From: Carpediemonas membranifera BICM
Taxonomy: Eukaryota; Protista; Fornicata
Assembly (NCBI GenBank): GCA_019828565.1
Contig: JAHDYR010000024.1
Coordinates: 342,834 to 406,833 of the forward strand
Direction of reading: 5' to 3'
Length of the DNA: 64,000 nucleotides
The notes beneath the pieces were generated by a model that was not told the origin of the DNA, searched no databases, and worked only from the letters and a program-made list of their open reading frames with translations. Below are positions 18,801 through 49,507 of this stretch, piece after piece; position 1 is the first letter of the stretch, and every line of letters begins with the position of its first letter. A program made the position numbers and the translations under genes.

Positions 18801-20734
18801 CCATAGCTCTGTCTCCTAGTAGAGATATCATGTGGCGACGTGACGACATGAGTTAGATACGATATGAGTATTCTGCAGCATGACATGACGGATGATCTCC
18901 GGGTCTGCCCGAAGGTACCATTGATGACTAAGTGTTAGGGTGCCAGAGGCTGCTCGCCTCTATTGGCCTGAAGGTGTTGTACTGAGAGGATGGGCGCATC
19001 GCTGGAGGACGGGCCGACATGTGTTCGAGCTGCAACATGCTCGCGATACCCGTGAGTTGCTCGTCACGGGATGAGGTGATAATACGACCATACTAGACTG
19101 GTCGTGGTTTCGGTACAAGTCTCACAGAGGAAGGGACCCGTGAAACTACTATCTAAACTCGTTGAAGAGCTGCTATGCGCGGTAACGCTGCCCCTCCGCG
19201 GCTCTGAAGCACTTTGTGTTGTCGCCGCGTTGTTGTCTGATGACTGTTGGTCTCGTGTCTACTAAATTGACTTCAAGCAAGGATGCCGGTCATGATAAGT
19301 GGAAGCTAAGTAATTACCTTACCTGAGTTTGGCGGGTAGCACAGCTAGCCTTGACAAAAGTGCGAGCCATTGTTGCTCAAATGGAGATGCTCGCGCCATG
19401 GGGTGAACGATGGCAAGCGCGATACAGTTGACAGCAGATGGGGTGTCTGCCCAGGCTGTCGCGTACTGAGGATGTGGATGAGCAGCGGTCGAGCTTATCG
19501 TTGCTCTATGACGCTGGTTGCCCCTGACAGGGAATTGCGGAGACGGTGGCGTGCTAGCTCTATTGGTTCATGCCGTGTTGCTGTACGTGGAAGGGACCTG
19601 CAAGCTGGCGAGTTCGCACATGTTCGGGGATAACTGGAGAGCAAACCTTGAAGCTGCTCAATACGGGTGCTGTTTCAGCACTGTGTGGATAGAAGGATAT
19701 AACTGGCCGTCTAGGACCCACTGCTAGCAGTTACGTGCTCCACATGCTCTGCTGAGCATTTGTTAGGAAGGTATACATGGCCTCATGTAGACATATAAAT
19801 AGTGTGGATCGCTCCCACGACTGTAGGAACCGAGCTTGGTGTCCCCAGATGGGTCGTTACCTCTTTCGGTTTTTCATCGTCGATGATGGTAGTTGCCTGT
19901 CTGGCTTGGGCCATTGGCCCTGTGCCACGCTTGCTCATGGTCTGCTGGATGACCCGAATGATGTATGACTTGCTCTGGGCGCATGTGGCCAAGCTGCTAC
20001 TCTCTAGGTAGCTCTGGATGATGGTTGGGGACGATGATTCTGGAGGTCTACGTTGGTCAAAAGTCGTGCGTGGGTCTGTCAGTGAGTCTACTGGGGTCAC
20101 TGCCCCTTCTTGGCTTCTTCTCGCACTGTCTCGGGGTGTTCGATTTGGCTGGACGTGGAAGTGGCTGGCTCCTCGGCGTGGTTTCGGTTTGTTTTGCCTT
20201 TTGGCGGCTTTGGTGGTGCTTATTCCTGGTGCTATCTGCACTGTATCGGCTTGTGCTTGGCCTGGCCACTGGTCTCGTTGCTGGTCTCGGTCGATTGTCC
20301 TGAAGGAGCTTGATTGGCGCTCCAGAGCTGGTATTGCGGTGCTGTATCGTTTGTTGGAGCTTATTGAAGCTTGGTTACTGGTATTGGCCTGTTGTTTGCT
20401 TGTATGCTATAGTGCATTGGTGGAAGTTGATGGTCTTGTTGAACTAAACGCTCTAGACTTGTTGTTGCTTGCGAATTTCAGTTGAACTGTCGACACCGCG
20501 GAGACATTTGCATTGCGCTAACGGAAGAAATTGGTTCTGGTGAAAATGTCAATTGATGTTGCTTATATTGATTCTCCTGCGCCAGGACCGTTGAGCTCAT
20601 CTCCTCCGGAAGAAATGATATCATTGTGGTCAGTCCTGGACACAAGGGAACCAATAAAGACTTTAGAGAGAATACTGCCATATCCTGCACCAAATGTGCA
20701 GGATAATACCTGTTGTGACCTGAGTCACACCACA

Positions 20735-21702
20735 GTGGGACGCTTCGCAGGGTCGAAGTGGAGCATCTGCATTGCCAGGTCGTACAGGCTGAGACAAGTA
20801 GGTGGCGTGGTGCCGCGAATCGGGAGCTCAGAGTTCACGTTGACACACTCGAGGCAATCTTTGAAATGTGTCTGTGCCTGAGGTGACAACTGCAACTGCC
20901 CACCATAGAATTGGCACCAGTTCAGCAAGCTACCAAGCTTCAGCATCTTTTTCTTCTTCTTGTTGTCGATCTGCGCCATGTTTGCACCCATGTCAGTCAC
21001 CTTCGCGGCAAAGGGGGACTTAGAGAGACCGTTAACGAGCATCATAATGACAATACCGCAAGAGTAAATGTCCGATGCAGGTGTCACGACATAAGAAGTG
21101 ACGGAAAGAGCCCCTGCCGTCATGCGCGCGAGCTTGGAGGTGTCGCGTGCAGCAGGAATCACTGAGCGCGAGACAAGGTACTCGTAGAAAAGCTCTGGGG
21201 GCAAATATCCATGGGTGCCGCGATACTCGGATGCGAATCTCAGTTGTATGGCCCACCTGTCGTCGCCATTAGCCGGCTTCCTCATTGCAGACCCAAAATC
21301 AATGAGGTATCCCTTCTGACTCTTGCTGAAGAGGAAGTTGTCTGGCTTAATATCGCAATGGACAACCCCGTGGTCATGCATGTAGCATACTGCCTGCAGC
21401 AGATGCGAAACATAGCGGAACTGCACGCTGGAGTGAGCCTTGCAGATGCCAGCGAAGGGGGTACAGTTGACCAAAGGAGCCATGAAGGCTGGATCACGGT
21501 CGACAAAACCTGTATCGACGACAGGGAGGACATGCGGACTGTCCTTGAGCGCTAGCAGGGTGGGAACCTCCATACCATAATGCTCATCAACTTTGATCAC
21601 GACCTGCAGCTTTTCAGGTTCAAAGTCGTGCAGATATTGTCTACTATTACCAGGTAAGGAAGTAAGTCGCTCCAGCTTGTCGCTATCTAGCTCGAACACC
21701 AT
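20735..21702 (-). pseudogene. Ser/Thr protein kinase (Cdc7/CK1-like catalytic loop), N-terminal part, disrupted by LTR insertion
   Basis: VVIK, HCDIKPDNFL, LIDFG, GTHGYLPPE, DIYSCG, FDPAKRPT. Reconstituted length is 431 aa. Confidence 0.85.
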
Positions 21703-21866: not shown

Positions 21867-22538
21867 TCAGATGAAGGAAAAGACGATACTGTCGGCAGTA
21901 TCGCTCTCTGAGCGCTCCTCATCAATCACATTCTCTTGAATCTCCCCATCACCATCTCTGCCCGCCACCTCCCCGCCATGCTCGTCGTGGTCGATCTTTG
22001 GTTCCTCATCGGCACTCTTGCATAAGTCCACCTCCTCACCAAAGGCGCCCTCCTCGCTCTCCTCGCGAGCTGGCACCTCGTAGTGCATCCACTCTGCCTG
22101 GTAAGCTGGCTCGTCGGACACCGCCTCCTCGTCAGTATCGCCCTCTCTCTCGCCCTCTGGCATCTCTGTCTCGCGAGTCAGCGAGCCGAACTCCGCCTCC
22201 TTGTCAGCCTCGCTCTGCCTCTCTTTCTTCTTAGTATCGTGAAGCTCGATCATTCTGGCCTTGAGCCTGTTGTAAAGCCAGTCATCGAGCATCGGCGGCA
22301 CCAGGTCGGCAGAGCTTGTGATCTCCGGGTTGAGATCAAAGATCGTCGGGCGCTGCAGGGTCGTCAGGTGGCTGTTTGCCAGCTGGTGGCGGAACTGATC
22401 ATCGGTGAGGCTGATGCGCTTGTCCATAATGACCTTCCGAACCTTGGTCAAGTCTCTGGGCCTGCCAGTCCGTCTCTCTCTCTCAATCTCCCGCGTCTTA
22501 AGCTGGTTGACATCGACATGCACCGGGGGCGCATAGCG
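21867..22538 (-). pseudogene. C-terminal half of split gene (continuation of 33884-34441) with long acidic tail
   Basis: Excising 22541-33883 plus one AA gives in-frame ..SVNQL|RYAPPVHVDVNQLK.. Confidence 0.8.
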
Positions 22539-23003
22539 AACATACTGTAAGAATGGCTAGAGTCTCCCGGGAGATACCCTGGAGATACTCCAAAAAGTGC
22601 AAGAAAAAATGAGATTCACTAGAATCTGTTTCACATTTCACATATTTCACAAGAATATGTGAAATGAGAAGCAAAGCTAGTGAATGTCATTTTTACTTGT
22701 CCCTCATCGTCTGTATGGCATCTATAAACAAATCACGTATCTCTTGCAGCAGAAACTCTGTGTCATTCACCCTTTTGTTGATTTCTTCTTCCTTTCGCAA
22801 GCCCTGAGCAGTTTTTCGGATTATTTTGTAAGAATCTTGTACTTTGGCAACTTCCACGAGCCCTGACGTTACCGTTTCTACCTTTTGGTGGCTAGTTGCT
22901 CGAATCATGATCGACAAATGTCGCAGTTTTAGGTATTGTCAATGCCAGGAGTCTACGTAAATAGACAAATGTAACAACGTAAACAGCTTGGATAGAAATT
23001 CTC

Positions 23004-24227
23004 ATGAATTCAGAAGTGTCTGTACCAGAACCTATTGCTGCTACGCCCCCCATCAGACAGTATGGCAACAGTAAGCTCGCAAATCTCCGTCGTTCATTTG
23101 TTACAGCCGTTGTTTCTTCAGTATTTGAGGACGACGAGGCAACTGACCTCGGCTTGAGTGCACGCGACATCCATAAGGTACTTCTGGAGGTCCAGCGCAG
23201 GGTCGCCGCCGAATGCCCTGGGTTCAAGTCAATTGAACTCCGGGAACAGGTCAGGCGGACGACTGTTGTCGGCGTTACTACGTTTATAACAGCAGTTAGA
23301 CCCTCTGCGGAGTACAATGGCTCTGTCATGCAGCACATTGCTGTCCGTAGTCAGCCCTGCCATGCCGAGTTCCGCCAGATGCTCTCAGAAGTTCTCTCAG
23401 ATGCTGGACTGAACGATGTTTCCGACTCAATCAGCCTTGAGAACTTGCCTGTGATCAACCGGGTGAGATATAAGCCTGTCAAGCAAAAGGCAACGGTCAA
23501 ATCGACCCCGACTACGATGATCAAGGCAGAGATCCCACCGATACGGTCGACTACGCAACTGTCTTCACTTGGTGTTGGTGATGAAGCAGACACACCTCAG
23601 TCAACGACAGATCGATCGGTGCCGGTTCGGAAGAAGATCGTCTTTGACGACGAGGAAGCCAAGCGACCCAGGCTTGGTGACGACGATCTGCAGCAGGTGT
23701 CTAACAACGTGTCCGATGCTGTTGTTGACCGTATTAAGGTCCTGATCAACGACGTTGTCTCAGAGACCCGTGTGAGAGACCCGCCTACCGAACCCGAGAC
23801 ATGTAAGACGACTTTCCTTAGCCTTCATCAGCGCAAAATGCTATTTGGATGTCTTGTGTGTGGTACCCCCGAGTGGTTCTTCAATCCAGACGGCACTACG
23901 TTCAGGAGATGCTGTGCTTGCAAAGGTTTCCTGCACGAGCAATGTGTCAGGACGAAGGGCAAGAAGGACTACTGTCCCGCGTGCTATATTACCGGCTCTA
24001 GCAACAAGTGCCAGGCGTGCAAAAAGGGCCTAAGATCCAAGAACACGAAGAAAGCAGAAGAACAGGCTTCTACTCTTCTTTGCTGCCGAGGCTGTCACTG
24101 GTGGTACTGTGAGCATTGCTCTGAGGAAGTGCAGTACACCATTGATGGCAAGTTGTACATCGTTCCCCTCTGCAGCAAATGTAAGGTTGTCTATAAGCGA
24201 GTAGAGGGCATGAGACCGATTGTTTAG
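23004..24227 (+). CDS. Double PHD-like zinc-finger protein (inner cargo)
   Basis: 407 aa. CLVC..CCAC..FLHEQC..YCPAC followed by CQAC..CRGC..WYCEHC..LCSKC. Same architecture as 2120-3307. Confidence 0.8.
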   Translation: MNSEVSVPEPIAATPPIRQYGNSKLANLRRSFVTAVVSSVFEDDEATDLGLSARDIHKVLLEVQRRVAAECPGFKSIELREQVRRTTVVGVTTFITAVRPSAEYNGSVMQHIAVRSQPCHAEFRQMLSEVLSDAGLNDVSDSISLENLPVINRVRYKPVKQKATVKSTPTTMIKAEIPPIRSTTQLSSLGVGDEADTPQSTTDRSVPVRKKIVFDDEEAKRPRLGDDDLQQVSNNVSDAVVDRIKVLINDVVSETRVRDPPTEPETCKTTFLSLHQRKMLFGCLVCGTPEWFFNPDGTTFRRCCACKGFLHEQCVRTKGKKDYCPACYITGSSNKCQACKKGLRSKNTKKAEEQASTLLCCRGCHWWYCEHCSEEVQYTIDGKLYIVPLCSKCKVVYKRVEGMRPIV

Positions 24228-24270
24228 TGTTTAGTGAGAGATGATCATAAATTGTATATATATCTGTTTA

Positions 24271-25281
24271 CTACACGTCTCTCTCAAGCGCACGGGTCAT
24301 CATGCTTATGTATCGATCATTCATAAGTCTTCTCTGGTCGGTTCTTAACGGGTCATACTCGTTGACATCAGAAACGATGTCTTGCATTTCAGGAAGAGGA
24401 ATGGGCCGGGCATAGCTAGTCTCAGACATGATGACCCTGGCCTCGTTGGGAAATGACAAGGAACCATTGGCTATAATCCGTCTTCCTGCTGAGCCAGGCG
24501 CGAAACGATAGCCAGAGAAGTACTTCGTCAGAAAGAAAAGAGGATTGTCGAGGCATGTCACGCGGTAGAGCCAATAGGCGTCCTGGAGAACAAGCTCATG
24601 CGCCAGAACCTTCTCAGGAGTGAGGATAATGCATGTGTTCTTGTACTTGGCTGTCGAAATAGCACTGCACAGCTGAGACTCCTCAGATCTGTCGAGTCCG
24701 GAGCAGGTGGCAAAGTAAATCAGACGCACACGCGTCGATCTCACCAAGGAAGGGCTCTCGAATGACCTGAGGATGAGCTGGACCAGATCATGGTGATACA
24801 GAAACTCGTTCGTAGACGTATCAATGATCATACGCGACGTTTCTGTATCAGAATGACCCGATATCACCCAGTAAGTGTCGAAGTTAGAGTACTGCGACGC
24901 CAACTCCTCAAGTACCTCGGCCAGATGGGACGTAGACTTAAAGGTGCGGGCAACGGCAGTCAGCCACTCATCATCAACGAGCTCTAGAGCCGTCTTGAGC
25001 TTGAAATGATAGCCAGATGAGTTGGCAAGACTTTCCACGCGGAAGACGGGGTAGGGCTGAGTCGGGGTCTCGAAACCATGCAGCGGCTCGATGGTGATTA
25101 GCACCCGTCGGTTAATCAACTTCTCTGTTGTAAAAGGACACTCGTGAGAGGAAGAAGACTTGAAACCGATCCCGCGATGTCCACGCCTGAGCTGAACCTT
25201 ACCACAGACACATTCAAAGACTTCTTGGTCCTTACTGATGCGTCGCGTGCCGAATTCTCCGTATTTCTCGTCCATTTGCAA
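24271..25281 (-). CDS. Putative caspase/CHAT-fold (clan CD) peptidase with N-terminal Zn ribbon
   Basis: YWVISGHS (His after a beta-strand) and LIYFATCSG (Cys after a beta-strand) with clan-CD-like spacing. N-terminal CVCG..HEC. Confidence 0.55.
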   Translation of the reverse strand: MQMDEKYGEFGTRRISKDQEVFECVCGKVQLRRGHRGIGFKSSSSHECPFTTEKLINRRVLITIEPLHGFETPTQPYPVFRVESLANSSGYHFKLKTALELVDDEWLTAVARTFKSTSHLAEVLEELASQYSNFDTYWVISGHSDTETSRMIIDTSTNEFLYHHDLVQLILRSFESPSLVRSTRVRLIYFATCSGLDRSEESQLCSAISTAKYKNTCIILTPEKVLAHELVLQDAYWLYRVTCLDNPLFFLTKYFSGYRFAPGSAGRRIIANGSLSFPNEARVIMSETSYARPIPLPEMQDIVSDVNEYDPLRTDQRRLMNDRYISMMTRALERDV

Positions 25282-25743
25282 TGTGCCATTTTTTTTTCAT
25301 GAATGGCACATTTTGATTTGAAGCAAAGGACAAGCTTTTGATCCAAGTAAAGAGGTATACCTTCATTGCTACACTATTTATGCATGCTACTGCAGTATTG
25401 TTCGGATCTGATCAGCGATGCGCCTGTTCTTCGGATCGGGAGTTGCGAGAAAAAAAAAGAGAACGAAGATATGGCGAGAAGAAAGATGCCCGCAAGGAAG
25501 CAGCAACCGGTAGGTAAGAGAAGGACTCAAAATCCACCCAACAAGACTTTTTGAGTCATCTGCTTCTCCGCAGGATCAACGTCCTGCGGAAACGACTGTA
25601 ACGGCAGCATCACCTCCTCCTCCGCCTCCCGAGTCGCCCGAGGATGGTAAGGAGCAAGATTCTCTCCTCCTCCGCCTCCCGAGTCGCCTTCCCATTCATC
25701 CAGCTCGTCTGAAGCCGAGGAGGACTCCGTCGAGGGGTCCGTC

Positions 25744-26430
25744 ATGCACGTCCACCCTAGGTGGACGCATGTTTACCCGGGTTCAGACCTGCAGGACGTC
25801 AAGCGGCTGATTTCGGATGAGATAAGCCTTCAGGCCATTCCTGCTCCGGCCTGGATCTCATCCGAGACCCGTTGCGACCCCCGTCTGACCCAGGAGCCCG
25901 ACCATCCGGCCCTCAATCGGACGCAGAGCGTCGGCCGAGGCATGATTGCCACTGAGGATATCTCAGCTGGCACATGTCTCGGCATATACTTCGGGAAGCT
26001 GATTCCCGATGCTGAGACGGCCAGCAACAACGGCCAGATGGTGTTTGTTTCGCATATTCCATTACCATTACACAGCATGTCATTCGCTGACAGTCAGGTC
26101 GCCGTCGATGCCATGTCGGCCGCAGCGGGTGTCCACCTGATTAACCACAGCCCTGACGATGTCAACTGTGAGTTCGTGGACGTCTTGGTGGATGGCCTGC
26201 CAGTGATATCGGTCAGGGCCACTGCCAACATCGTTCGCGGCGAGTTCTTGCGCATCGATTATGGCGAGACCTACTTTGAGGCCGATGAAGAGGAGCACCC
26301 GGTTGCTCGCTTCAAGAGTCTCGCCATAGATGACCCTCACTACCTCGCTCGAAAGGTGGAGCAGTTCAAAAATACTGCAGGTCAAGCCGCAGCCCCGCAA
26401 GCGGAAGACCAAGTCCAACCCCGCCCGTAA
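25744..26430 (+). CDS. SET-domain protein (inner cargo; possible upstream exon from 25471)
   Basis: GRGMIATEDI..GT.LGIYFG, HLINHSPDDVNC, I.RGEFLRIDYG..YF. Confidence 0.9.
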   Translation: MHVHPRWTHVYPGSDLQDVKRLISDEISLQAIPAPAWISSETRCDPRLTQEPDHPALNRTQSVGRGMIATEDISAGTCLGIYFGKLIPDAETASNNGQMVFVSHIPLPLHSMSFADSQVAVDAMSAAAGVHLINHSPDDVNCEFVDVLVDGLPVISVRATANIVRGEFLRIDYGETYFEADEEEHPVARFKSLAIDDPHYLARKVEQFKNTAGQAAAPQAEDQVQPRP

Positions 26431-26503
26431 GCGCTTCCACACTGCGCGCATGACTCAAGGCAAGAGTGAATAAACTTGAAGAGATATCAATTCAATCAAT
26501 CAT

Positions 26504-27400
26504 TTATGAGCGGGTGACATCCTCCGGACGAGTAGCACGCTTCTCGGGCTCTGCGGCAGCTGCCTTGCGCTTGCGGTCCGGAAGACTGTAGACACAGGCA
26601 TGACGATTCTCGATGACGATGAACTGAGTGAGCTTCATGCTCTCACAAAGACCTAAGATCTTGTCCAGCGTCGCATCCTGGATGGGCAAGAACTCTGAAT
26701 CTTCCCAACCTTTGTGGACCCAGAGGCAGGTAAGGTCCTCGTCGATCTGGGTGATGATTACCGGAGTGTGACTCAGCTCTACACTGGCCTGGATGGCCTC
26801 ATGGTCTGCCCAGGGGAAAGGGGAGCCAGGCATCTCAGAGAACGGGTCGCCCTCGAACCCCTTGCCCTCACAGAAGGATCGGATGTCCTCGTACAGCTGA
26901 AGCTTCTCACCAACAGTAGGCTGGGACCCAGTCCTGATGAGATGCATGGCGCTGAGAATGCATGAGCCATCCCCAGGCACCTCAGACCGCTTCAGAGAGC
27001 TTGTATCGTTCTTAAACTTCTTAGCGGTCTTCTCCATGATGGTCTGGACGTCATCTTTGGGGTCTGCGGCCACCAAAGCCTCCCGATCCAGGTCTATGAC
27101 CTCAGCCTCCTTCTTCAAGGGCACAAGCTTCTCCGTCTCGAGCTTTTCAATCTTGGCCCGGGCTCGCCAAAGCTCCCTCTTCAAATCACGGATCGCACCG
27201 TTGTGTTCCACGGCAAGATGGCGGCGCAGGAGGCGCGATGTGCCACTCAGGGTACTTCTGTGGACGGGAGAGTCCATCAGAAGCGCGTCCAGGTGCCTTA
27301 TCCGGTCGAACTGCACGTCGACCGGGTCCGACAGCTCAGGCTCGGCGTTGTTCTTGAACGAACGGACGACCCCCGACCTTCCTGGCTTCACCTTGCGCAT
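26504..27400 (-). CDS. OTU-like cysteine protease/deubiquitinase with coiled coil
   Basis: VPGDGSCILSAM catalytic loop, WAD..AIQA, and C-terminal ENRHACVY His. Confidence 0.75.
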   Translation of the reverse strand: MRKVKPGRSGVVRSFKNNAEPELSDPVDVQFDRIRHLDALLMDSPVHRSTLSGTSRLLRRHLAVEHNGAIRDLKRELWRARAKIEKLETEKLVPLKKEAEVIDLDREALVAADPKDDVQTIMEKTAKKFKNDTSSLKRSEVPGDGSCILSAMHLIRTGSQPTVGEKLQLYEDIRSFCEGKGFEGDPFSEMPGSPFPWADHEAIQASVELSHTPVIITQIDEDLTCLWVHKGWEDSEFLPIQDATLDKILGLCESMKLTQFIVIENRHACVYSLPDRKRKAAAAEPEKRATRPEDVTRS

Positions 27401-27441
27401 TATGCGCTCACGGAGCAGCGAAAGGACTGAATAAGCAGGAG

Positions 27442-27913
27442 TTATTTGGAGTACTTACCTCCAACGTCGTGCTCGTGATCCGAAGACACTTCTCGGCGGA
27501 CCTTCTGGACAAGGCTGTCGTAGGCATGATCTCCCATGACCTTCTTCAGCTCAGCCGATGTCGTGATCAGCTCAAGCTGAGCCTCGGCAGTTTCTCTTAG
27601 GTGCAGGATAAGGTGAGGCGACCTGAAGAGCTTGCGAAGCGTTTTCCAGCCAATATCTGTGTAAAAAGGTATGGGGAAAGTACTTACGATCACGAAGAAG
27701 GGCGGTGAGGATCTTGTCATCGGGCAGAAGGAACTTACGAAGAAGTGAGCACTTGATCATCTCCTGCGCGTTTGATGAGGCCTGACTGATCTCAGCGCTG
27801 TCATAGAAGATAAAGAACTGCTTACCAAACGTTTTCGAACGCTTCAAGAGCATGTAGAAGTCGAAAACCGATTGCATGATTATAAGGCTCTCAGGACCTA
27901 ATGAAAAATTCAT
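27442..27913 (-). CDS. Hypothetical protein, probably one gene over two overlapping frames
   Basis: Overlapping ORFs 27572-27913 and 27442-27720 on the same strand, possibly joined by a small intron. Confidence 0.35.
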
Positions 27914-28047
27914 AAGGCTCTGAGAGCCTAATAAACCATGCGGAAAAATGACCAGTATCAGTAGGCAACGGCGCGCGGGAGATTCATTAGGCTCTGAGAG
28001 CCTTATACACGATTTCGAATTGGTGTATAAGGCTCTGAGAGCCTTAT
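27882..28047. promoter_or_regulatory. Cluster of four palindromic ATAAGGCTCT-N-AGAGCCTTAT sites
   Basis: Copies at about 27882, 27912, 27986 and 28027, between divergently oriented ORFs. Confidence 0.5.
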
Positions 28048-28695
28048 GAACTCAGAGGAGGTCCTCAGGGCACTTCGGTGCAGAATTTTGATTGGGCATC
28101 TGATTGGACCATGGGGCGGATGCTCAGAGGGATGAATGCGAGCTCAATGGAGACCATTGGACATGTCAGAGATGGCATGTCCAGGTGAAGGTCCATCATG
28201 GAAGGAGCCATTCACGATAAGTCTTCTAAATGTTGTGTTGCGAGCGTCTGAAGGGCTTTCTCTGGATACCGACCAAGATGGAGGTCACGTGGATCAACGG
28301 ACGATAATTGCGGTATTCTGGCCTTGTATGCCACTCTTAAATCCATTGTTTGATCCATTCCCGCGTTTATAGTTCATCTCAACGCTTCCTCGACGAGTTA
28401 CAATTGTTGATGTTGTTTAGGTTCTATTACAGGCCATTCGAGGCCACAGAGCTCTCATGATGTTGTTTTTAGTGATATACACATGCTTGCCAGCGTTTGA
28501 GGATCGATACTCTTCTCCTTTCTTCGTTTGGTTTTCTAATTTCGTTGCGAGCATAAAGTGCACCTTGAAGAAACGTTATGCCTCCGAAACGGAGTAATAC
28601 TGCTAAGAGCAAGGGCAGAAAGCGTCTAAACGCTGTGGAAATGATTTCTACTTACTTAGAGAAGGAGCACGCTGCTGGAAGCATCTCCGCTGCCG

Positions 28696-29265
28696 ATGTC
28701 GCCACCGGAAACCGCATTTGCAATGAGGGTGGTTGACAGACGCCCCAATGACCTCCCCACATTCGTTCCGGAGGATCTTAGGGATGAAGCGGAGTTCCGT
28801 TCTCTCGATAGCATTGAGCAGATCATGGCGCAGTACAAGGGCGAGTCTTCTGAGGCCAAGGAGAAGCGCTTCAGGGCCCTCATCAGCCTGGACGCCGAAG
28901 GAGATGAGGTCGACCATGGCAGCCCTCTCTTGGCAACTGTCCGTGAGTACCGCGAGCTGTTCCACGGCATCCCTCAGTCGGTCCGCCCCCGCGCTTACGC
29001 CTTCGTCGCCCAGAGGCTTGGTATCTCTGTCGACAAGGTCAGAGAGGTCCTTCTGGAGAGTGTGTGCCGCAAGGACTCTAAGCTCATCTTCGAGCGTCCG
29101 CAGCTTGTCCTCAAGAAGCACTCGAAGACCTTCAAGGACCTCGCCGCTGTGATTGAGAAGAGGAACGCTGCCCGTGCCGCTGCAGAGGCTCGTGATGTTC
29201 TGCGTATACCCGTTTACGCGAGCCTCCTGCTCTTCCACGCAGCTAACGTCAACTCAAATGAGTAA
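28696..29265 (+). CDS. Helical protein with possible helix-turn-helix
   Basis: 189 aa. RAYAFVAQRLGISVDKVREVL fits an HTH pattern. Confidence 0.5.
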   Translation: MSPPETAFAMRVVDRRPNDLPTFVPEDLRDEAEFRSLDSIEQIMAQYKGESSEAKEKRFRALISLDAEGDEVDHGSPLLATVREYRELFHGIPQSVRPRAYAFVAQRLGISVDKVREVLLESVCRKDSKLIFERPQLVLKKHSKTFKDLAAVIEKRNAARAAAEARDVLRIPVYASLLLFHAANVNSNE

Positions 29266-29388
29266 TAAATCGACTGCTTCTTCATTTAATCTTCATTCTC
29301 TTCCTCATCTTCCTTCTCAGACAGCAGATGGTACCACTCTTCCTCGAAATAGTTCTCTTTCTGGTAATCCTTACGCATCTTTGATCTC

Positions 29389-30072
29389 TTATCCACGATC
29401 TTTTTGGACCAAATCCCTTCGGTTGCTGTCGTAAAGGGCGATGATTATCTCACGTTGCTTCTTGCGCGTCGGGTGCGGGGTAACACTCTTCCTCAGACGC
29501 TTAATGTAGCGGTTGAGCTTGTCCGAGGGCTTGGTGGGCAGGGTGGGTTGGGTGGCTTGGGTTCTCTTTGGGGGAGGCTGGACCTGGTCCACAGAAGTGA
29601 AAGCCGTACCGTAGTCGACGGACGGGGGAGCCCTCCAGGACTTCATGGCATATCCATGGCAAGCAACGAGACTCTCACCGAGCTTCGTCCACTTGTTCGG
29701 GCCGTATGTTGCCTCCATGGTCACCAGTTTCGCATCATCCAGGTACTCCATCGTGGACTTTTGCTTGGAGATGGACATCCCCATACGCTGGTAGGCTGGC
29801 ACAAGAGAACTTACACACTGCAGGCGGATCCTCTGTCCGGCAGAGGCAACCGAAAGAAGAATCGTGGCGAGACCATTGCCCCTGGCATAGAATGCCGTGC
29901 GAATAACCACAACATATAAGTCCTGGCGCAGCTCGGAAGGGGTTTCATCAGTAGCTTCGGTGTTGTATGACTCCTTCGTGAGCAACAAGGCCGAAATGAT
30001 GGAATCAGTCTTGCAGTCACGAATCGCAACCAATCTGGGTAAATACCTGGGCAACACTGGGTGAACAAACAT
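29389..30072 (-). CDS. GNAT-family acetyltransferase (inner cargo; N terminus uncertain)
   Basis: LYVVVIRT..ARGNGLATILL (acetyl-CoA motif A) and AYQRMGM (motif B). Confidence 0.7.
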   Translation of the reverse strand: MFVHPVLPRYLPRLVAIRDCKTDSIISALLLTKESYNTEATDETPSELRQDLYVVVIRTAFYARGNGLATILLSVASAGQRIRLQCVSSLVPAYQRMGMSISKQKSTMEYLDDAKLVTMEATYGPNKWTKLGESLVACHGYAMKSWRAPPSVDYGTAFTSVDQVQPPPKRTQATQPTLPTKPSDKLNRYIKRLRKSVTPHPTRKKQREIIIALYDSNRRDLVQKDRG

Positions 30073-30385
30073 GAAGAAGCGATGATCGATGTCATCAACT
30101 CCTCTCGTGGCAACGTCCTGCTTAAAAAACGTACGGACACTGGGGATGATGTCTGACTTATCAGAAAGTCTTACGTATTGTATATAAGCCTTATGGGCTG
30201 CAAGAGTATCCTCTGTCCAAGATTCTTTTCCCCGTTTGGTTCATTTTCACAAACTTTTGTGAAACCTGCGAAATGTGAAATGTGCCATTCATGAAAAAAA
30301 AAGTGGCACATATGAAAAATGAATGAATTTATCACGGAACCATCTTACATCACTTTATATCACGCGGATGCCTCAATTCTGTCTG

Positions 30386-32924
30386 CTACACTCTCCACAC
30401 AGGCAGCAAACTAACTCTATGCCATGGTCCGCCAGACTGCATGACATCGTGCCCTCCCTCACCCCACGTCAGCGTCGTATGCTCTTCTACAAACTCCCAC
30501 ACTTCATCAACAGTCTCCTGAAAGGTCTGGATCATCTCACGAGTTGGCTCGAAGGTCACGGTGGTCAGTGTGCGGACACCAAACCAATGCTTCGCATCCT
30601 TACAGCAGTCGTGAACTCGCACACACTTGAGTCGCTGGAGCTGGGGGACAGAGTAGTCCTGCCGACCAAAAAGAACGCATGCCCGTCAGGAAGGAACACG
30701 CGAGAGTTGTCTGCTCGATCAAGCAAATGCCCTCAAGGACTGCCTTCCTGTGCAACTTGGCTGCTACCTCCTGGTTCTTGATGAACTCTCGCTCAAAGTA
30801 CTCCTCTAGGATATAGAACAGCGGCACCTTGAGATGCTTGTGGCACAGGGGCTGCGTCGTGAGTCTGCTGATGCTGTAGAGGTTCTCAGCGCACGGTTTC
30901 TCCTTCGTCTTCGCTTCGCTGCTTGATAGCAGGGATATGGAAGTCTTATCCTTGTTAGGAATGAACGCAATCGTGACGTGAATGAGGTGGGCCACTGCGG
31001 CAGCCATGAAGTGAAACGCGACAGCCGCGTCAGTCACAGGTTCGGACGAGTAGTACATGGCCTGGAGGTAGCCAATGAGCCGAATGATATCTTGAATGCA
31101 CTCAGGGAGAGCAACGTAGTCCTCTTGGTCGTGGCAGCCATCCTTACACGTGCGGACGACTGCTCGTTACAACCTACGGTCCTATCGATGCTTCGCATGG
31201 ACGACATACGGCCAAGCTTGAGGTTGAGGAGCTTATTCTGGATGATCTCCTCGCGGGACCCGCGGGTGGTGGGATGCTTCTTGAAAGAACCACAGATATG
31301 GGCAACCTGCTCGAGTAAACGGTGCGAGTCGTGCATGAATGGAGGGCATATGACGATCTTCTCAAGAGGGATGACACTACAATTCTCGAACACCATGCGT
31401 TCATTGGTGAAATCGCCATAGATTGCAAGTACATCTTGAACTCGGTTCGGGTCGTCGACTTCAGCCTGGTATGCTGTCTTATCGTCCAGGTTGTCCTTGA
31501 TGGTGAGACGATGGCGGCCTGCTATCGGGTGGAGCGCCTTACTTTTGTGGTAAATCGTGTTGCAAGGGTGTGGATAGTTGGGCCGGCCCGACTTTCTGGA
31601 CAGCATGTGGCGGAGGGCGGCATGATCGCCCATGACGATGACATGGTCGAAGATTGTGACCTCACCAGTGTCTCTGATGGGTATCTGACTCGTGTATAGG
31701 CGCTCAATCTCCTTCTCGACGCGAGAAAGAGACTCTTCCATCAACAAATCACCCTCGCTACCCATATACTCGACTATACGGAAAGGTGGAGTAATCTTGT
31801 TGGGGAATGTGAAGCCTGTGGGGTCGTAGATGCGGAGCTTGAAGGCAGCAGAACCCCCTTTCCACCCGTCAAGCCATAGTAGGATCTTCATGGGGCTAAA
31901 CGTGACTCCAACCCTGTTGCCAAGGGCGTTCTTGCATCGAACGTAGTTGGGCTGGTCCGACTCGAGCCATTCCGGGTGGCGAACAGCTTGCTTGAGGTAA
32001 CGAACGGCATCAAACCAGACTCGATCAACCTTGTCCCATGTGGAGCTGTTGAGCCGCTTGCCGAGGGTGACTCCCTGGGTCTGCTTGAGCTCAGGGCGAT
32101 GACTTGTGGCCTCATCGCTCGTCTCGTAGTGAAGATCAAGCATTGGCTTCTCCCACTTGAAGTCAATGACGTTCTCCGCGTCCGTCAGGGGCTGGATATC
32201 GACACCCTCGTCCACCGTTAGGCGATTGGTGCACTCGAGTCTCGACTTTGTGCCATTTCTGCCCCACCGCCAGGTCGTGTTGACTGTGACAGACTCCACA
32301 GGGACGAGATGACCCAAGAAAGCAACCTCTGGTCTAGTCAGCGCTGCAACCAGGCCGTTGATCTTGGTGATATTGACCTGCAACTGCTTCACGAAGATAT
32401 CAGCAGCCTTGCTGGAGATGATTGGCATATGAAGTCGCGCAGAAAGACTACGGATGAGCTTAAAGAGCTCATGGGTTGCGTTACAACCCGACTTGATGTA
32501 CATCAGGATAGAAACAAGCTCCAAAAATCTGCTTGTAGTTGTCAGTTTCCTCAGTTGAGACCTCGTGCTGTCTCCGCAAGCGTTCGTGGGTGACAGCAAT
32601 ACGCGCGTGGTCACGTACGAAGACATCGAAGGTCGGGGCGACTCCTCTATGGGAACGTACTGCACGCAAGAAGGGTCGAGAGTCGTGCGGGTCGGCGAAA
32701 AATCTCGGATCGACCTCCATGTCCGCAAATAGGCCCTGGTTAGCCATTTCCAAGATGAGTTCACGGAATTCTCGGCGCTGGCGGCCTCGATCCTGTGTAT
32801 TTCCGCCAATACCAACAAGGGAGAGGTATGTATGAGCGAGAATGTAGTTCATACGCTCTGCAGTCCTTGGAGGGCCAGTATTGTCGTAGACAGTGCCAAT
32901 GAAGGTCTGTATGACAATGTGCAT
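30386..32924 (-). pseudogene. DDE transposase of inner element (several frameshifts)
   Basis: Successive frames give LLWLDG, KITPP, GDHAAL, PPFMHDSH, GCNEQS, MYYSS and FYILEEYFER, collinear with 45925-48489. Confidence 0.8.
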
Positions 32925-33883
32925 GCTCAGGAATTTTTGCTGAAGTCACTTTCACATTTCACAAGTTTCACAAGAGTTTGTGAAAGATTTTTGGTTTGGG
33001 GCTTCCGCTGCTCTGTTTCCTCCAAAAAGTTGTGAGCAGCAACTACACTGAGTTTTATACGTATTCTATGCTTCTCATACCCATTGATGCGTTATTGCGC
33101 AATTCTGCTTTGCCCTCAAAGGAAAAGTGAATTTGAATTTCCCCCTGAATCTTGCAAGATACTGCGGAAGTAACGGTAAGAAAAAATGAAACTCGCCAAC
33201 GAAAGCAGCTGGAAGAAAATGGTAAAAAGTATTGGAACTAGGACAATATGGTGTACACTCTGAGCAACTTCATTTCTTTCTGGCGTTCACCTGTGTCACG
33301 AGCTCTTTGGGCACTGTTTCGGGCGTTAGGACAAACCAAGGGTTCCATGATCCTTTGTTGATCTAGTTACACCTCTGTTGTTAGCACAATCTTCCAAGAC
33401 CATCTCATCGTTGATAAAATTTTGCAGATTTTTCGAATGCGAGAAAATGAAGACTTCCCCACAGAACCTGAGTATGTACGGATAGTACTTGACCCCCATG
33501 GATTATCCCCCCATGTTTGGTTTTTGTGGGGAAGTCTTCATTTTCTCAATCTCTTGATTCAATCATTAATTCATACGGAAGTAGAAGATACTGGAGGCTG
33601 AAAACTTCAGAGGGCATTGCTATTAGCTATAAAACACCGCTGTTAAGATCCCATGTTCGAACGAGCACTTCACATTTACAACATAAAATGCGTTATCCTC
33701 TTTTATCAACACTGACACCATGTGATACTTCAAGACGCCAGACATGTCTTTTATGCTTCTATAACTACCTTCTAGATGTTCTGGAGGTGCCTGAGATCGC
33801 CTGGATCGCGAGGTTTGACCAGCGTTGACACATGAGTATCTCCAGAGTATCTCCCGGGAGACTCTAGCCATTCTTACAGTATG

Positions 33884-34441
33884 AAGCTGGTTGACACTGA
33901 GCCCGACCTGCTTGACAGCCTCCGAGAAGGTGCTCGGCGCTACATGAGACAGTGCGGATGAGGCCTTGGAGAATACTATCCAGGCAGCGAGCTCTTCGGG
34001 AAGCTGAAGAGCTCGCTCACTGATGTCAATATCGCGGGCGGAAATAGCTGTCATGCCCGTGTGGCTGATGATAAGAGCCAGCGCATTGTAGGGGAAGACT
34101 AGTCGGACAATAGCTTCCGATGCGACAGGCTCAAACTGCCCAAGCGGCTTGACATTGTCTCTGCCGGAGTTTCGGAATGAGTTGACGGCACTGAGAGTGA
34201 CAGCAGCGGTTGCCTTGTTCAATGATGCAGCAAAACCGGGCACAAGCGATCTAACCTCCTCGGATCGGATCACGGAGAGCGCTTCGTCCTCGGTACTCCC
34301 TCGCTCACGTTGTACGAATTGAACGAACCGCGAAAGGTTGTTTGCGGCCGCTTTCCGGGAAGATTTCTTCTTAATCTTGTTCAACCAAGCTTCTTTCATA
34401 GCTTCCATGGTTGTTTCCATCTCCTGCGGGCTTCCTTCCAT
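33884..34441 (-). pseudogene. Tyrosine-recombinase-like protein, N-terminal half, split by the inner transposon
   Basis: Core-binding-like helices (EAWL..S.K..NNLSRFVQF..AT..LSAVNSF), then ALIISHTGM(T) and NQLR at the positions of YR box I/II. Catalytic residues are not canonical. Confidence 0.45.
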
Positions 34442-35558
34442 CGATATACGGATTTCAGACTTTCGTCATGCACAAAAATTCGAATCTCTCCAAATGCCCA
34501 AAACAGTGGTCAAACCGTGTTCAGGGGTACAAAAGAGTGCCATAGGCACGTTCTTGCATTTCAAAATATTCTAGAGGTCGTTCATAAATTCTCAGATGGC
34601 CAACAGTACGAAAGTCTGAAATCCATTTATCATGAGACCCGACAAATTTGAAATCCATTTATCGGGTGGATACATCACTGTAGAGGGTATTCATGGATAT
34701 AGGTGCCTTTTCGGTGCCGAGGGGAGTCAACATTTGAGGTCGTGCAGGCAGAAAGTCTGAAATCCGTATATCTCATCACTGCTTATAGATCCTGGCAGAC
34801 AACGGCCTCTTGGCAACGCCTGAGGTGAAAGGATTCGCTTGCCTCTGTGTTGTCGCATCAGCTTCGCTGAAAACGGGGGAACTGACCCGCGCATTCGCGC
34901 ACTTTATGCTCGCAACGAGATTGAAATGGCGAACTTAAGAATAGAAAGAATACTGGCGGCTTTAACGTAGTAGGCATGTGCACAACATTAAGAATCATCA
35001 GTAAGCGGGCGCAGAGCATCATTAAAGCAACAATAATCCCTAAACAACATCAAGTACCATAAGTCCACCACGTCCATACGATATGAACTATAAATGGAGC
35101 ATAGATCAGTACAGATGATTTGAAAGTACCAGGCATGGCCAGAATACCGCAATTATCGTCCGTTGATCCACGTGACCTCCATCTTGGTCGGTATCCAGAG
35201 AACCTCCGTCAGACGCTTGCAACGGAACATTTAGGGGGAGCATCCTGAATGGGGCCAGATTTGAGGGACCCTTGGTCTGACATGCCATGACCGAGTACTC
35301 TAGGGGCCTCCACAGTGCGTCCCGAGGTACGTTATAGCACCACAGACCTTCCCCCAAAAGCTGACTCCTGGACCCCTTGGCCGGAGCTCGCCGAAACGTG
35401 AAAATCGGCGATGATTTCTCCGTATAACTTCATAGGGGGTTATATGGGGCTCGTTTTAGCCGCAGATAACGTCTCTTGGCCATATTAAATTTGCGAAAGG
35501 CCCCGGCTCGCTGGCCGGACGATTTAATCAGCATCGGCGAGAATGGACGTGTGGGTAG

Positions 35559-45778: not shown

Positions 45779-45924
45779 CTACATGAGTCACCCTTGCAGT
45801 GGACGTGGTTGTGGAGCACCCCCAGTGTCTCCACGTCCGCCACCAGCGCCAGATCCGCCACCATGCCCTACATCAGCACATTTGTGTATTTACTTTGTAA
45901 ATTTGTCCTATTGCTATTGAAGCA

Positions 45925-48489
45925 ATGCGTTTCGAGAACTGGGAAGTCGTCATCACCTATGGGGCGGACAGTTCTCTTGGATCTATCATCACCGCTGTCT
46001 TAGACGAGTTTCTGCTCCGAAACCGCGACAAATCGTTTCGTTTAGACAGCAAGGAGCAGTGCTTGCGCATTCTCCGAGATTTCCTGACGTCATGTCCACT
46101 GAGGGTGACACATAGTGATGCTACGTTACGTAGTGCAGTCGTTAATGCTGATTGGAGCGCATTGATGAGGAATCACAGCACTGCTCATGTGACTGTTACG
46201 CGAGTCGACAACGAGGCGAAGACGAAGAGCCTATACACGGCCATGGCAATTATCTGTGCCGTCGAGTTAGGGAAGAATCGCTACGACCGACTCCGCCATG
46301 CATTTGTTTCAATGGCCTCCGACATGGGAGTTCGCCTTGGAATTCACACTCCACCGGTGGTAGACAGTCTCCAGAATCTTGGGTATGACCTGCTGTCCAT
46401 CCCAGCCATACGATCTGTTATATCAGACCCAACACTGATCGAGGACGTCAACGCGTTCACTCCTGAGCAGCCCGATGTCTCTGGGCGTGATGGGGTGTCT
46501 AACCAAGAGCTTCAATGTCAAGCAGGAGCCGGTTTCACGCGTAGCGTGGAAGTCGCGGAGGCTTTTTACGTCCTATATGACCCAACCACCCACACCGACC
46601 TGCAAGAGACTCTCGATGAACACGACTGCCTCTTCGCTCACCACTTCGAGAAGATATCGGGGGAGTCACGGCTATACATTTCGCATGATGATCCATCCAA
46701 GCTGCCGGAGATTCAGAGATTATGCCGGAACATGGGCATCATTCCGCGTGGAACAAAGAAATCTCACCGGATGGTGATCAGCGCTCTGTCCTATGACCCT
46801 GTCGCCCAGATTAAGTTCATGCTGAAGTTCCCCGACCGAGTTCAGCGCGATATCAAGTCAAGCAAGTTCGTTCAATCCGTCACTATTAACCCGGAGAGCC
46901 GACAGGAGGCTTATGGTCTTGAGATGCTCCTATGGTTTGATGGATATCGGGCCGACTGTACGGCGGTCAAATATCGCATAATTGATCGCGAGGGAGCAGC
47001 CCTACCACAGAAGATTACCCCACCCATGACGCTTCTTACATTTCAGGGCACAGAGAAGCTCATTCCTTCGTTCTTTGATGATGTACAGCGGCTAATGAAC
47101 AAGCTCATTGGTATCCCCTTCGCATGTGGTGACAGTTCGTTGCTCCCACGCAGCCGTGTTGTCATCAGCCTGCTCGGGATCTGCGGCGATCACAAAGCGT
47201 TGCAGATTGCTAGTGGCGTCAAGCGGGGACGATACTACCGCTCTCCATTCTCCTCCCTACACATGGGAAAGGTCGCAAGCGACCCGTTTGCCAATCGTTG
47301 CGATCGCTGGACAATCGCAGATAGCATCCGTCTTCGTGACGCTGGTGGCGTGAAAGACATGACACGGTTTGGGTCCCGCGATGGTCACCGAGATGTCTGC
47401 TGTCTGACCTATGCCAACGAGATAGATGGCCCACTTCACGTGCTCACAAAGTACGCTGATGTCACGTTCATTCCACCTGTCATGCATGTGAGTCACTATC
47501 TTATGAAGGACTTCTGGACGCTGCTTGGCCTTGTCAAGGTTCAACACGCTGGTCAGAACGTGCACACACTTGAGCAGATTGAAAAGCTGTTCACGCGGAC
47601 AACTGGCTGCAACGAGCAGAGCTGGAACAGACGAAAGCTCGCGACACTAGTCAACGAGCACCTTGAGGAGTTTGACCAGTCACTCCAGCCCTTCATACTC
47701 CTGACAGCCAAGTTACAGGCGTTGTATTACTCCTCTGACCACGTGACACACCAGACAATCGCTTTCCATCACGCGGCGTCCTTTTCTACGTTCATTATGT
47801 TCCATGTCTTGACGTTGTTCTATGACCTTCCATCGAGTCGCTCCTCGGTTGCTACGACGCTCAATGATGGTCTCAGACTGACTTACTCTCCCAAGTTTAC
47901 CGGCTCGCTATATCTGAATGCAGTGGTGTCAGTTCTGCCCAAGGTTCACTCGAAACTGCGGCTTCCGATGTTCTATTTGCTTGAGGAGTACTTCGAACGT
48001 GATTTCCTCATCAATGCCCAGTTGCGAGTGGACAAGCATCGATCTTGGGTTCTCGGCTTCCTGGCTCAGAAGACAATGGTCGGTCGTGTCCTTGCTCACT
48101 ACACCCGCCGTGGCTCATCGAGAAAGCATGGTATGGTGTTGCCGATTGCAAGGCAGTGTAAGTCTGTCACATTCTGCTCGTGTCTATTTGATGCCGACCG
48201 GTGTGCCGCCTGGAGAAATCGTCTATTAACTAAGGTACCCAACTGGGATAGGGAGGCGAGCCAACAGTCGCTGAATGCGCTGTTTAGTGGATGGGTCAAG
48301 GGTATCTGTGAGGAGCCGGAGGAGATCCGGGAACTCATCACTGTTGACGAGACAGCCAAGACGATTTGTGTAAGGACGGCGGACAGTGGTCTGGATGAGA
48401 CTCTCTGCATCTGCAATCTGTGCAACAGTGAGCAGCGAGCGGAGGAGCTGATGAGGAGGACTGGGCACAATCTTCGCCCGAGAAGATAG
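45925..48489 (+). CDS. Intact 854-aa DDE transposase, divergent CMC/EnSpm-Transib-like
   Basis: LLWFDG (D1), ICGDHKAL (D2), PPVMHVSH (xMH motif), LEEYFER (E), C-terminal Cys cluster. Lies about 1 kb inside the right TIR. Confidence 0.8.
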   Translation: MRFENWEVVITYGADSSLGSIITAVLDEFLLRNRDKSFRLDSKEQCLRILRDFLTSCPLRVTHSDATLRSAVVNADWSALMRNHSTAHVTVTRVDNEAKTKSLYTAMAIICAVELGKNRYDRLRHAFVSMASDMGVRLGIHTPPVVDSLQNLGYDLLSIPAIRSVISDPTLIEDVNAFTPEQPDVSGRDGVSNQELQCQAGAGFTRSVEVAEAFYVLYDPTTHTDLQETLDEHDCLFAHHFEKISGESRLYISHDDPSKLPEIQRLCRNMGIIPRGTKKSHRMVISALSYDPVAQIKFMLKFPDRVQRDIKSSKFVQSVTINPESRQEAYGLEMLLWFDGYRADCTAVKYRIIDREGAALPQKITPPMTLLTFQGTEKLIPSFFDDVQRLMNKLIGIPFACGDSSLLPRSRVVISLLGICGDHKALQIASGVKRGRYYRSPFSSLHMGKVASDPFANRCDRWTIADSIRLRDAGGVKDMTRFGSRDGHRDVCCLTYANEIDGPLHVLTKYADVTFIPPVMHVSHYLMKDFWTLLGLVKVQHAGQNVHTLEQIEKLFTRTTGCNEQSWNRRKLATLVNEHLEEFDQSLQPFILLTAKLQALYYSSDHVTHQTIAFHHAASFSTFIMFHVLTLFYDLPSSRSSVATTLNDGLRLTYSPKFTGSLYLNAVVSVLPKVHSKLRLPMFYLLEEYFERDFLINAQLRVDKHRSWVLGFLAQKTMVGRVLAHYTRRGSSRKHGMVLPIARQCKSVTFCSCLFDADRCAAWRNRLLTKVPNWDREASQQSLNALFSGWVKGICEEPEEIRELITVDETAKTICVRTADSGLDETLCICNLCNSEQRAEELMRRTGHNLRPRR

Positions 48490-49448
48490 ATAGATGGATA
48501 ATCGGAGTATGTATATAAAGGGTTCTTTATGTTTACACTATCTTCACCAATCTACAGTCAATTACGTCTATTGCGAGCGAAGAACAGCTTTCAGTAAGAA
48601 ATTTGAGGCAACTGTCAGGTAATTCTTAGTAACGTCGTCGGCAATGGCGTAATAGTCATCCATTTCAGTCAAGTGACTCAGCTTAACGCGCATTTGCTTG
48701 ATTTCGGCGATAAACTCGGCCCGCTTCATTCGTTTGTCATAAAGTGCATTCCGGCCATATCACAAGTTTTCTTCATCACAAGGCACGCACGGGGGTGTAA
48801 GCGGGACCGAGGCTACCACCACAGCCTCTTCTGAGCCGATGGATACCTTTTGTTGATTTGCCAGAATTGACCAAACGACGAGGAATGCTTGATATGCCGC
48901 GTATGGATGATTTGAAGAAGAACTGAAGGTGAAAGACAAAGATCATAGAAATACACATCATGCGGCTCACTTTTGGAGACATTGGAGGTAAATTAGCTTT
49001 TAGGATCGTTTTTCGTTTGCCAGGCAAAGTTTTGAGTGTTTTCTCGAGAATACTCGATGCCGTATGCAATCTTGCTGCTATTTGATGCAGAACAAAGGTT
49101 GTTATGTGACACAGATGTTCTCACTTGCTTTCGGCCTTCTTTGTTGGCGAGCAAAAGCAAACTTCTTTGGGAGCAATTCCCAAAAATCGCATCTTTACGC
49201 ACCCAGGAAATTTTATCTCGGCATACTGGACCAGTGGGGGAGGCACGGCAGTCTATCCCGACCCTAGATGAACCATGAGACAGTTTTTCGACGAGAGTTT
49301 GTGCGATGCCACTGACTTCGCGAGTGAAGGTCTTCAGCATGTTGTACGGATGTCTAAACGATGCCTTGTGCAAGTGCAAGGCGTAATACGCTGTAGTTTA
49401 ATTGTTTGAGCGCGTTCATTTTTTCTTGCAATCGTCCTTTTTTCATGT

Positions 49449-49507
49449 ATTCCGGGACTTATTCCGGGACTTAAAGTCCCGGTTAAAGTACCAGAAAAAA
49501 CAGCATG
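49449..49507 (-). repeat. Right TIR of giant transposon
   Basis: Reverse complement reads catgctgttttttctggtactttaaccgggactttaagtcccggaataagtcccggaat. Confidence 0.92.

Follow-up and report, generated by a model that had tools for sequence, protein, structure and literature searches.

What kind of mobile DNA lies inside another at positions 22541-33883 of the 64,000-nt stretch of the genome of Carpediemonas membranifera, a free-living protist, analyzed here (contig JAHDYR010000024.1, positions 342,834 to 406,833; hereafter the window)? An 11,343-bp unit, hereafter the inner element, sits there within a larger relative, the outer element, and a sequence-only reading of the window had proposed that the two are diverged kin following one rule of 5'-CAT termini and 2-bp target-site duplications (TSDs). 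This proposal has held up, with the same rule found in 15 of 17 testable end pairs of the inner family, at two base-exact empty sites, in three clean pairs of the outer family and in a complete element from a separate assembly. We conclude that the inner element is almost certainly a cut-and-paste DNA transposon, and probably a young, multi-copy one from an unnamed lineage that works like the CACTA-Mirage-Chapaev-Transib (CMCT) group.

Insertion site of the inner element

The inner element is bounded by 50-nt terminal inverted repeats (TIRs) that are 98% complementary, with a single mismatch, and AA stands directly outside both ends, in agreement with the sequence-only reading. The features that define the insertion are the following (strand given where it applies).

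22539..22540: left copy of the TSD (AA)
22541..22590, plus strand: left TIR, 50 bp, beginning CATACTG and containing a 12-bp palindrome
33834..33883, minus strand: right TIR, 50 bp
33884..33885: right copy of the TSD (AA)
33884..34441, minus strand: 5' half (186 codons) of an interrupted 409-aa cargo gene of the outer element
21867..22538, minus strand: 3' half (223 codons) of the same gene

In-silico excision of the inner element together with one AA joined the two halves into a 409-aa open reading frame (ORF) running from 34441 to 21867 on the minus strand; removal of 0, 1 or 3 extra bases gave only 199-216 aa. We searched the genome (24.24 Mb, 69 contigs) for this gene as two separate halves. 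At six further sites (C16, C18 twice, C36, C38 and C47) they adjoin to the base and form a continuous open frame of 417 or 452 codons. Because the halves abut in one frame elsewhere, an empty site for the inner element exists, and both the exact restoration of the frame and the uninterrupted copies anticipated from it were recovered. An assembly chimera at this site was ruled out, since both flanks are parts of one gene.

The interrupted gene itself resembles, from motifs judged by eye, a degenerate tyrosine-recombinase-fold protein with an acidic tail, and its Pfam match to Phage_int_SAM_1 was very weak (E 0.47). Genome searches gave 92 matches for one half and 135 for the other, some of them mosaic alleles in which a 28%-identical N-half is joined to an 88%-identical C-half.

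Copies, target-site rule and age

The first 30 bases of the inner TIR occur 53 times in the genome, and a control pattern had zero occurrences. These ends formed 18 pairs, most of them 11.3 kb apart and three longer, of which 17 were testable (the C6 pair was omitted). A TSD of exactly 2 bp was present in 15 of these 17 pairs and one of 3-9 bp in none (binomial P about 6e-16). The 15 duplications read AG, GC, AA, CT, CC, AA, CC, GG, TT, CC, AA, TG, CT, GG and GA; thus the length claimed for the duplication stands, and its sequence, given as AA, can be any two bases. On these pairs, a chance origin of the TSD and an AA-specific TSD were both rejected.

A second base-exact empty site was provided by an inner-family copy on C38, which lies inside an outer-family transposase gene and whose flanks map to window positions 46644-46943 and 46942-47241. 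Comparison of nine full inner copies (11,336-11,353 bp) revealed 6-37 substitutions between them in 11.3 kb (99.7-99.9% identity), and the burst was therefore recent. Base composition around the insertions was weakly biased (of 52 flanks, 26 had G at position -5, 26 had C at -8 and 21 had A at -4), which is a hint only because paired ends are not independent, and none of the 52 flanks ended in TA. Taken together, the TIR-bounded unit moves as a whole, joins with a 2-nt stagger, duplicates free sequence with little target choice and nests into its kin. The ends at C21:25389 and C26:1028287 (L020 and L029) share identical 300-bp flanks, which suggest that a region was duplicated, or is redundant in the assembly, and not that two insertions took place.

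The outer element and the shared terminus

The host of this insertion is delimited by the following features.

1607..1672, plus strand: left TIR of the outer element (CATGCTG...), with a GT TSD at 1605-1606
49443..49507, minus strand: right TIR of the outer element, with a GT TSD at 49508-49509
45925..48489, plus strand: outer transposase, intact, 854 aa (J8273_6817), with the empty site at 46942-46943 that was hit by the inner-family copy on C38

Spanning 1607-49507, the outer element is flanked on both sides, beyond its GT duplication, by pieces of a gypsy-type pol gene, and without its nested insertions it measures about 22 kb and resembles the copies on C3 and C47. Three of six attempted outer-family pairs had a clean 2-bp TSD, while the remaining three were widely separated or fell within rearranged regions and may be mispaired. 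The TIRs of the two families had been described as alike in the terminal CAT alone; this understates the likeness, since 6 of the first 7 bases are identical (CATACTG in the inner and CATGCTG in the outer element, joint consensus CATRCTG). Palindromes lie within both TIRs, as had been noted, so that the ends consist of CATRCTG followed by family-specific inner palindromes. The transposases are homologous, again as claimed, with 27% identity over 268 aa (E 7e-18) and 34% over 126 aa for a C-terminal piece. The transposase adjoins one end in each element, though its direction varies, reading inward in the inner element and in a relative from another assembly (L107, below), and outward in the outer element and in L100 and L109.

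Other components were found within the outer element. A 4.9-kb element without a long ORF occurs as two 99.9% identical copies in opposite orientation (15832-20737 and 35553-40468; about 110-bp terminal direct repeats), and positions 11029-15831 hold a Gypsy-type long terminal repeat (LTR) retrotransposon, whose 98-bp LTRs are identical and whose 1335-aa ORF has a chromodomain at its end. A protein kinase cargo ORF (20725-21702) is truncated by LTR-like inserts, and its missing end may be the Cys-rich piece at 10691-11026; L103 likewise contains a kinase with a Cys-rich tail. Internal duplications (3096-5038, 43140-45792 and 6461-10570) comprise 1.8-kb tandem units and a 1.9-kb inverted copy, which contains a HEPN-like ORF (Pfam E 0.01-0.09).

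Transposase fold and relatives

The transposase of the inner element occupies the right part of the unit.

30375..32924, minus strand: DDE transposase gene, about 850 aa if whole, in the pieces 32481-32924, 31034-32626 and 30600-31058; reads inward, 3' end approximate
31868-31870 and 31625-31627, minus strand: putative catalytic D codons; 30792-30806, minus strand: EEYFE motif containing the putative catalytic E

Neither single transposases nor profiles of 7 and 51 rows matched any family in sequence searches of Pfam and PDB. We modeled a natural 613-aa stretch from another copy (L092; predicted local distance difference test, pLDDT, 90.5), for which Foldseek matched RAG1 (E 2e-9), which rearranges the antibody genes of vertebrates, BbRAG1L (1e-6), HzTransib (2e-5) and the P transposase (6p5a; 8e-3), and structure comparison (VIA) gave RAG1 a Z of 15.6 over 449 residues. 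Transposase_21 and RAG1 clusters among the Atlas features (0.86-0.87) are leads only. The motifs WxD, xDH, PPxMH and EExFE are conserved, and the inner-family transposase is predicted to adopt a RAG1/Transib-like fold on which the D-D-E triad is kept.

A profile search of 1.84 billion proteins with the transposase family yielded 59 matches, about 18 of them close and the rest distant and mostly metagenomic. The close relatives, where traced, came from C. membranifera, assembly GCA_002919055.1 and a metagenome, and they formed one group in a FastTree tree, which held this family and its matches only, had no true root and gave long-branch warnings, and was used solely for this close-family grouping. 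Contig PPCM01000946.1 of GCA_002919055.1 (L107) carries a complete element of 11,629 bp whose ends read CATACTG, together with a GC duplication and its own inner palindromes; a distance of 400 bp separates its transposase from one end, and the element also holds OTU, protease, SET and PHD genes. On the metagenome contig L109, a CATGCTG-type sequence occurs about 790 bp past the related transposase (one end only).

At least six further families of related transposases (27-57% identity) are present in the C. membranifera genome, and in several of them the frame stays open for 850-970 codons. Three contigs (L100, at 8262-8750, L101 and L102) stop at the same base, 489 nt past a related transposase, in ...CCGACAT, which could be a CATG end minus its last base or a PlavakaA-like TGTCGG end.

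Cargo genes and non-coding features

The inner element carries, in order, a PHD ORF, a clan-CD protease-like ORF, a SET ORF, an OTU-like ORF, a palindrome array with a conserved non-coding block, a helix-turn-helix (HTH)-like ORF, a GNAT-like ORF and the transposase.

22600..22699: subterminal imperfect palindrome containing a TTTCACA-cluster motif (22629-22664), 5' of the PHD gene
23004..24227, plus strand: 407-aa ORF with a PHD-like Cys-rich finger at its C-terminus (weak Pfam RH_dom only; homologues at E 2e-13 in L103 and 6e-12 in L109, each next to a related transposase)
24271..25275, minus strand: 334-aa caspase/CHAT-fold (clan CD) cysteine-protease-like ORF, putative His codon 24853-24855 and Cys codon 24703-24705
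25744..26430, plus strand: SET-domain ORF (Pfam SET E 1.8e-11; homologues in the outer element, L100, L105 and L107), frame open from 25651
26504..27400, minus strand: 298-aa OTU-like deubiquitinase ORF, putative Cys codon 26960-26962 and His codon 26600-26602
27572..27913, minus strand: 113-aa ORF for which searches gave no homologue, possibly not a gene
27878..28054: array of four palindromic repeats of about 21 bp
28140..28565, plus strand: non-coding block, about 73-79% alike to outer-element positions 34895-35316 (opposite strand)
28578..29265, plus strand: HTH-like ORF of about 228 aa (189 aa in the window copy, with one extra G at 28727; weak HTH Pfam matches, E 0.04-0.13)
29389..30072, minus strand: GNAT acetyltransferase-like ORF (phmmer matches at E 2e-7 and 5e-5 to proteins that have a Pfam GNAT hit and adjoin related transposases in L105, L109 and L100)
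30245..30280, minus strand: TTTCACA-cluster motif 5' of the GNAT gene
32950..32985, minus strand: TTTCACA-cluster motif 5' of the transposase
33441..33547: subterminal imperfect hairpin with 51-nt arms

The true start of the SET ORF is uncertain because of indels. The protease-like ORF has a G-H and a C that are invariant across 6 homologues, and its model, of middling quality (pLDDT 66), fitted best to SAVED-CHAT (Z 11.5), MALT1 (10.1) and caspases (9-10), with DUF6642/CHAT among its Atlas features; the predicted caspase fold and putative His-Cys dyad are those of clan CD. The OTU-like ORF had no Pfam match by itself, and the profile of 5 aligned domains, in which D-G-x-C and a distal H are invariant as in OTU deubiquitinases, matched OTUD3 (4bou, E 4.5e-5), pointing to a putative enzyme of this type. 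The putative catalytic residues of both families remain invariant at 17-57% identity. The same cargo gene types recur in L100, L103, L105, L107 and L109 in shuffled order, with protease, SET, OTU and GNAT genes adjoining related transposases in L100, L103, L105 and L109. In L103 (1-3932), a related element has PHD, RCC1-repeat and kinase genes next to its OTU, SET and protease genes; the former three are probably further cargo.

The non-coding block of about 430 bp includes an identical 66-bp core (28258-28323 and 35137-35202) in two elements whose transposases are 27% identical, and it has about 130 candidate places in the genome. It matched no Rfam family and was not found in the other assemblies examined, and Rfam returned sub-threshold hairpin matches only across 22400-35600. 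RNAalifold on two copies gave 4 double changes, which from two rows only are no evidence of structure, and a coding function of the core was rejected (zero synonymous changes). Since the block precedes the HTH-like gene in the inner element and the 409-aa gene in the outer one, a promoter or regulatory cassette is our best guess, with an RNA as the alternative. The TTTCACA cluster lies upstream of three genes, PHD, GNAT and transposase (3 matches against 0.19 expected). A bacterial promoter scan was at chance level. Contigs from runs guessed to be RNA were found, in the 6 kb tested, on the HTH-like ORF only.

Weighing the evidence

Several observations weigh against a recently mobile, CMCT-like element. 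The pairs on C4 and C35 (2 of 17) have no TSD match, likely through recombination between copies or misassembly. No sequence profile matched any named CMCT family or RAG1, and the P-element transposase ties with RAG1 in fold score (Z 14.7 vs 15.6). Of the two zinc motifs common to every described CMCT lineage, C(2)C after the second D is absent (HPCN in the inner and SPFS in the outer protein), and H(3-4)H before the E is absent in both proteins, with the first H in some close kin only. Cargo content differs between families, and no expression of the transposase or GNAT gene was seen in four contig sets, which show presence only. Finally, no intact inner transposase ORF was found in the nine copies compared or among the genome matches, the longest open frame being 824 codons.

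Against these stand the features that define the CMCT clade: termini of the CA..TG type, TSDs of 2-5 bp and the pair of zinc motifs (Kojima 2025, PMC12730594). The 5'-CA..TG-3' termini were found at the 53 inner ends, in the outer family and in L107, the 2-bp TSDs fall within the range, and both zinc motifs occupy the same aligned columns in four distant matches (P0020, P0028, P0038 and P0056). On these alignments, the simplest reading is that the transposase lineage came from a CMCT-type ancestor and would then have lost its zinc site; we infer the direction of this loss, because the tree has no true root. We are fairly confident that the inner family is a CMCT-type lineage.

The missing intact transposase might instead mean that the family is non-autonomous, its transposase truly broken and its copies mobilized in trans, either by a sister family whose transposase is 55-57% identical or by a single intact copy that escaped notice; we consider this improbable. 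The window copy is broken near 32523, 31126 and 30668, each of the nine copies has at least one break (the first two are each open in 6 and closed in 3 of the 9, the third is closed in 5), and the frame of about 850 codons occurs in none of the inner-family genome matches. However, the pattern of breaks ignores kinship by single-nucleotide polymorphisms (SNPs), as C1a and C26c, only 6 SNPs apart, are unlike at both 32523 and 31126; 60 of 75 indel sites among the copies lie within runs of at least 3 bases; two short-read contigs lack the single extra bases of the window copy at 28727 and 30226; and the transposase core contains zero in-frame stop codons. Given the homopolymer indels, the short-read contigs and breaks unlinked to kinship, assembly error is the likely source of the breaks.

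The cargo could also consist of neutral host fragments captured by Pack-type transduplication, with no role for the element, and the variation of gene order and content by family, with no activity or expression shown for most of the cargo, would fit this. We nevertheless regard such an origin as unlikely, since three independent sources have the same gene types next to related transposases, where they form full ORFs whose putative catalytic residues stay invariant at 22-30% identity, and the protease family was found only in related transposon elements.

Proposed mechanism and significance

For a CMCT-like element of this kind, a transposase from an intact copy of the inner family or of a sister family would pair the element ends and recognize the terminal heptamer where it cuts, with family specificity conferred by the inner palindromes. 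Excision would follow the nick-and-hairpin chemistry of RAG1/Transib, to judge from the fold. With less assurance, the cargo may be kept by selection as a chromatin kit composed of a PHD reader, SET and GNAT writers, an OTU eraser and the clan-CD protease, which could keep the element transcribable or counter its silencing and might be controlled by the HTH-like protein and the TTTCACA motifs. Because the gene types recur and their putative catalytic residues are kept, we propose that the cargo may act on chromatin for the benefit of the element, and judge that the chances of such a role are about even. A broader proposal is more tentative: the families may represent a superfamily-level RAG1-fold lineage without a zinc module, with a recombination signal sequence-like 7-bp end (CATRCTG), a selected chromatin kit (PHD, SET, GNAT, OTU and caspase-like protease) across Carpediemonas-like protists and a 66-bp cis element or RNA common to families.

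The lineage and its cargo set appear to be undescribed, as no description of these Carpediemonas elements was found in a limited literature collection, and the Carpediemonas genome paper contains no word starting with 'transpos' (PMC8516963). The elements occupy a visible share of the genome that it describes; therefore, many 'hypothetical' Carpediemonas genes would be transposon cargo. The inner family extends the group from which RAG1 arose by a branch that is recently mobile and apparently undescribed, in a metamonad host distant from the animals and fungi of the named lineages. A relative with a 2-bp stagger and without zinc motifs allows one to ask, in a natural setting, which features of RAG1/Transib determine target spacing and hairpin chemistry, and the recurring SET, GNAT, OTU, PHD and protease genes provide a testable case of transposon-borne chromatin enzymes.

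Comparison with known transposon systems

Among known systems, RAG1, Transib and ProtoRAG (PDB 6dbi, 6oem, 6b40 and 6pqn) gave the best core fold match and share the D-D-E order, the motif spacing and a conserved 7-bp terminus with the inner element. In contrast to them, the inner element has CATRCTG ends, neither C(2)C nor H(3-4)H, six cargo genes and 10-15% identity, and no RAG2-like gene was seen in it. The RAG1-like fold is thus predicted, whereas the 5-bp TSD typical of Transib (PMC4411706) was found in 0 of 17 pairs of the inner family. EnSpm/CACTA elements (Transposase_21) resemble it in their short TSD, CA..TG ends and internal repeats near the ends, and in an Atlas feature lead (0.87), but they have CAC ends and 3-bp TSDs (PMC12730594). 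The inner element has neither CAC termini nor a Transposase_21 domain; its transposase gave no Pfam match, and no TnpA-like second gene was identified in it.

The sequence-only reading had implied that the CAT/2-bp rule was new; its novelty is lowered, since fungal PlavakaB elements have CATCA..TGATG ends with 2-3-bp TSDs (PMC12730594) and the rule therefore has precedent. That the inner family is a diverged PlavakaB (or ESTA/Lanisha), and so a new member of a named CMCT lineage, nevertheless seems unlikely. PlavakaB shares the 5'-CAT ends, 2-bp TSD and multi-kb size (6-9 kb) and may carry the epigenetic cargo TET/JBP (PMC12730594), but the inner and outer ends begin CATAC and CATGC rather than CATCA, the cargo is SET/GNAT/OTU/PHD/protease, 0 of 30 family proteins matched Pfam Plavaka (PF18759), and Plavaka retains both zinc motifs, which the inner family lacks. 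A genome search with PF18759 was blank, as was its control, and carries no weight here. ESTA requires a TA TSD, which no flank shows. Because a defining feature of each named lineage is missing, as are the motifs of the clade, we assigned the inner element to no named lineage.

Membership in the P-element superfamily, at high divergence, rather than in the CMCT group is very unlikely: the P transposase (6p5a) ties with RAG1 in fold (Z 14.7, root-mean-square deviation 4.7) and the Drosophila P element likewise begins with CAT, but the alignment is shorter (332 vs 449 residues), the Foldseek E just 8e-3 vs 2e-9, the TSD of P elements 7-8 bp rather than 2 bp, and distant kin of the inner family show the CMCT order of the motifs C(2)C and H(3-4)H. 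For the cargo, VANDAL Mutators of Arabidopsis offer a parallel as DNA transposons carrying anti-silencing genes. Fungal TET+ elements (PMC12730594) are likewise DNA transposons with chromatin-mark genes, but both systems use other transposases, whereas the inner element couples its RAG1-like enzyme to what is, from its sequence, a putative multi-gene histone-type set with a clan-CD protease.

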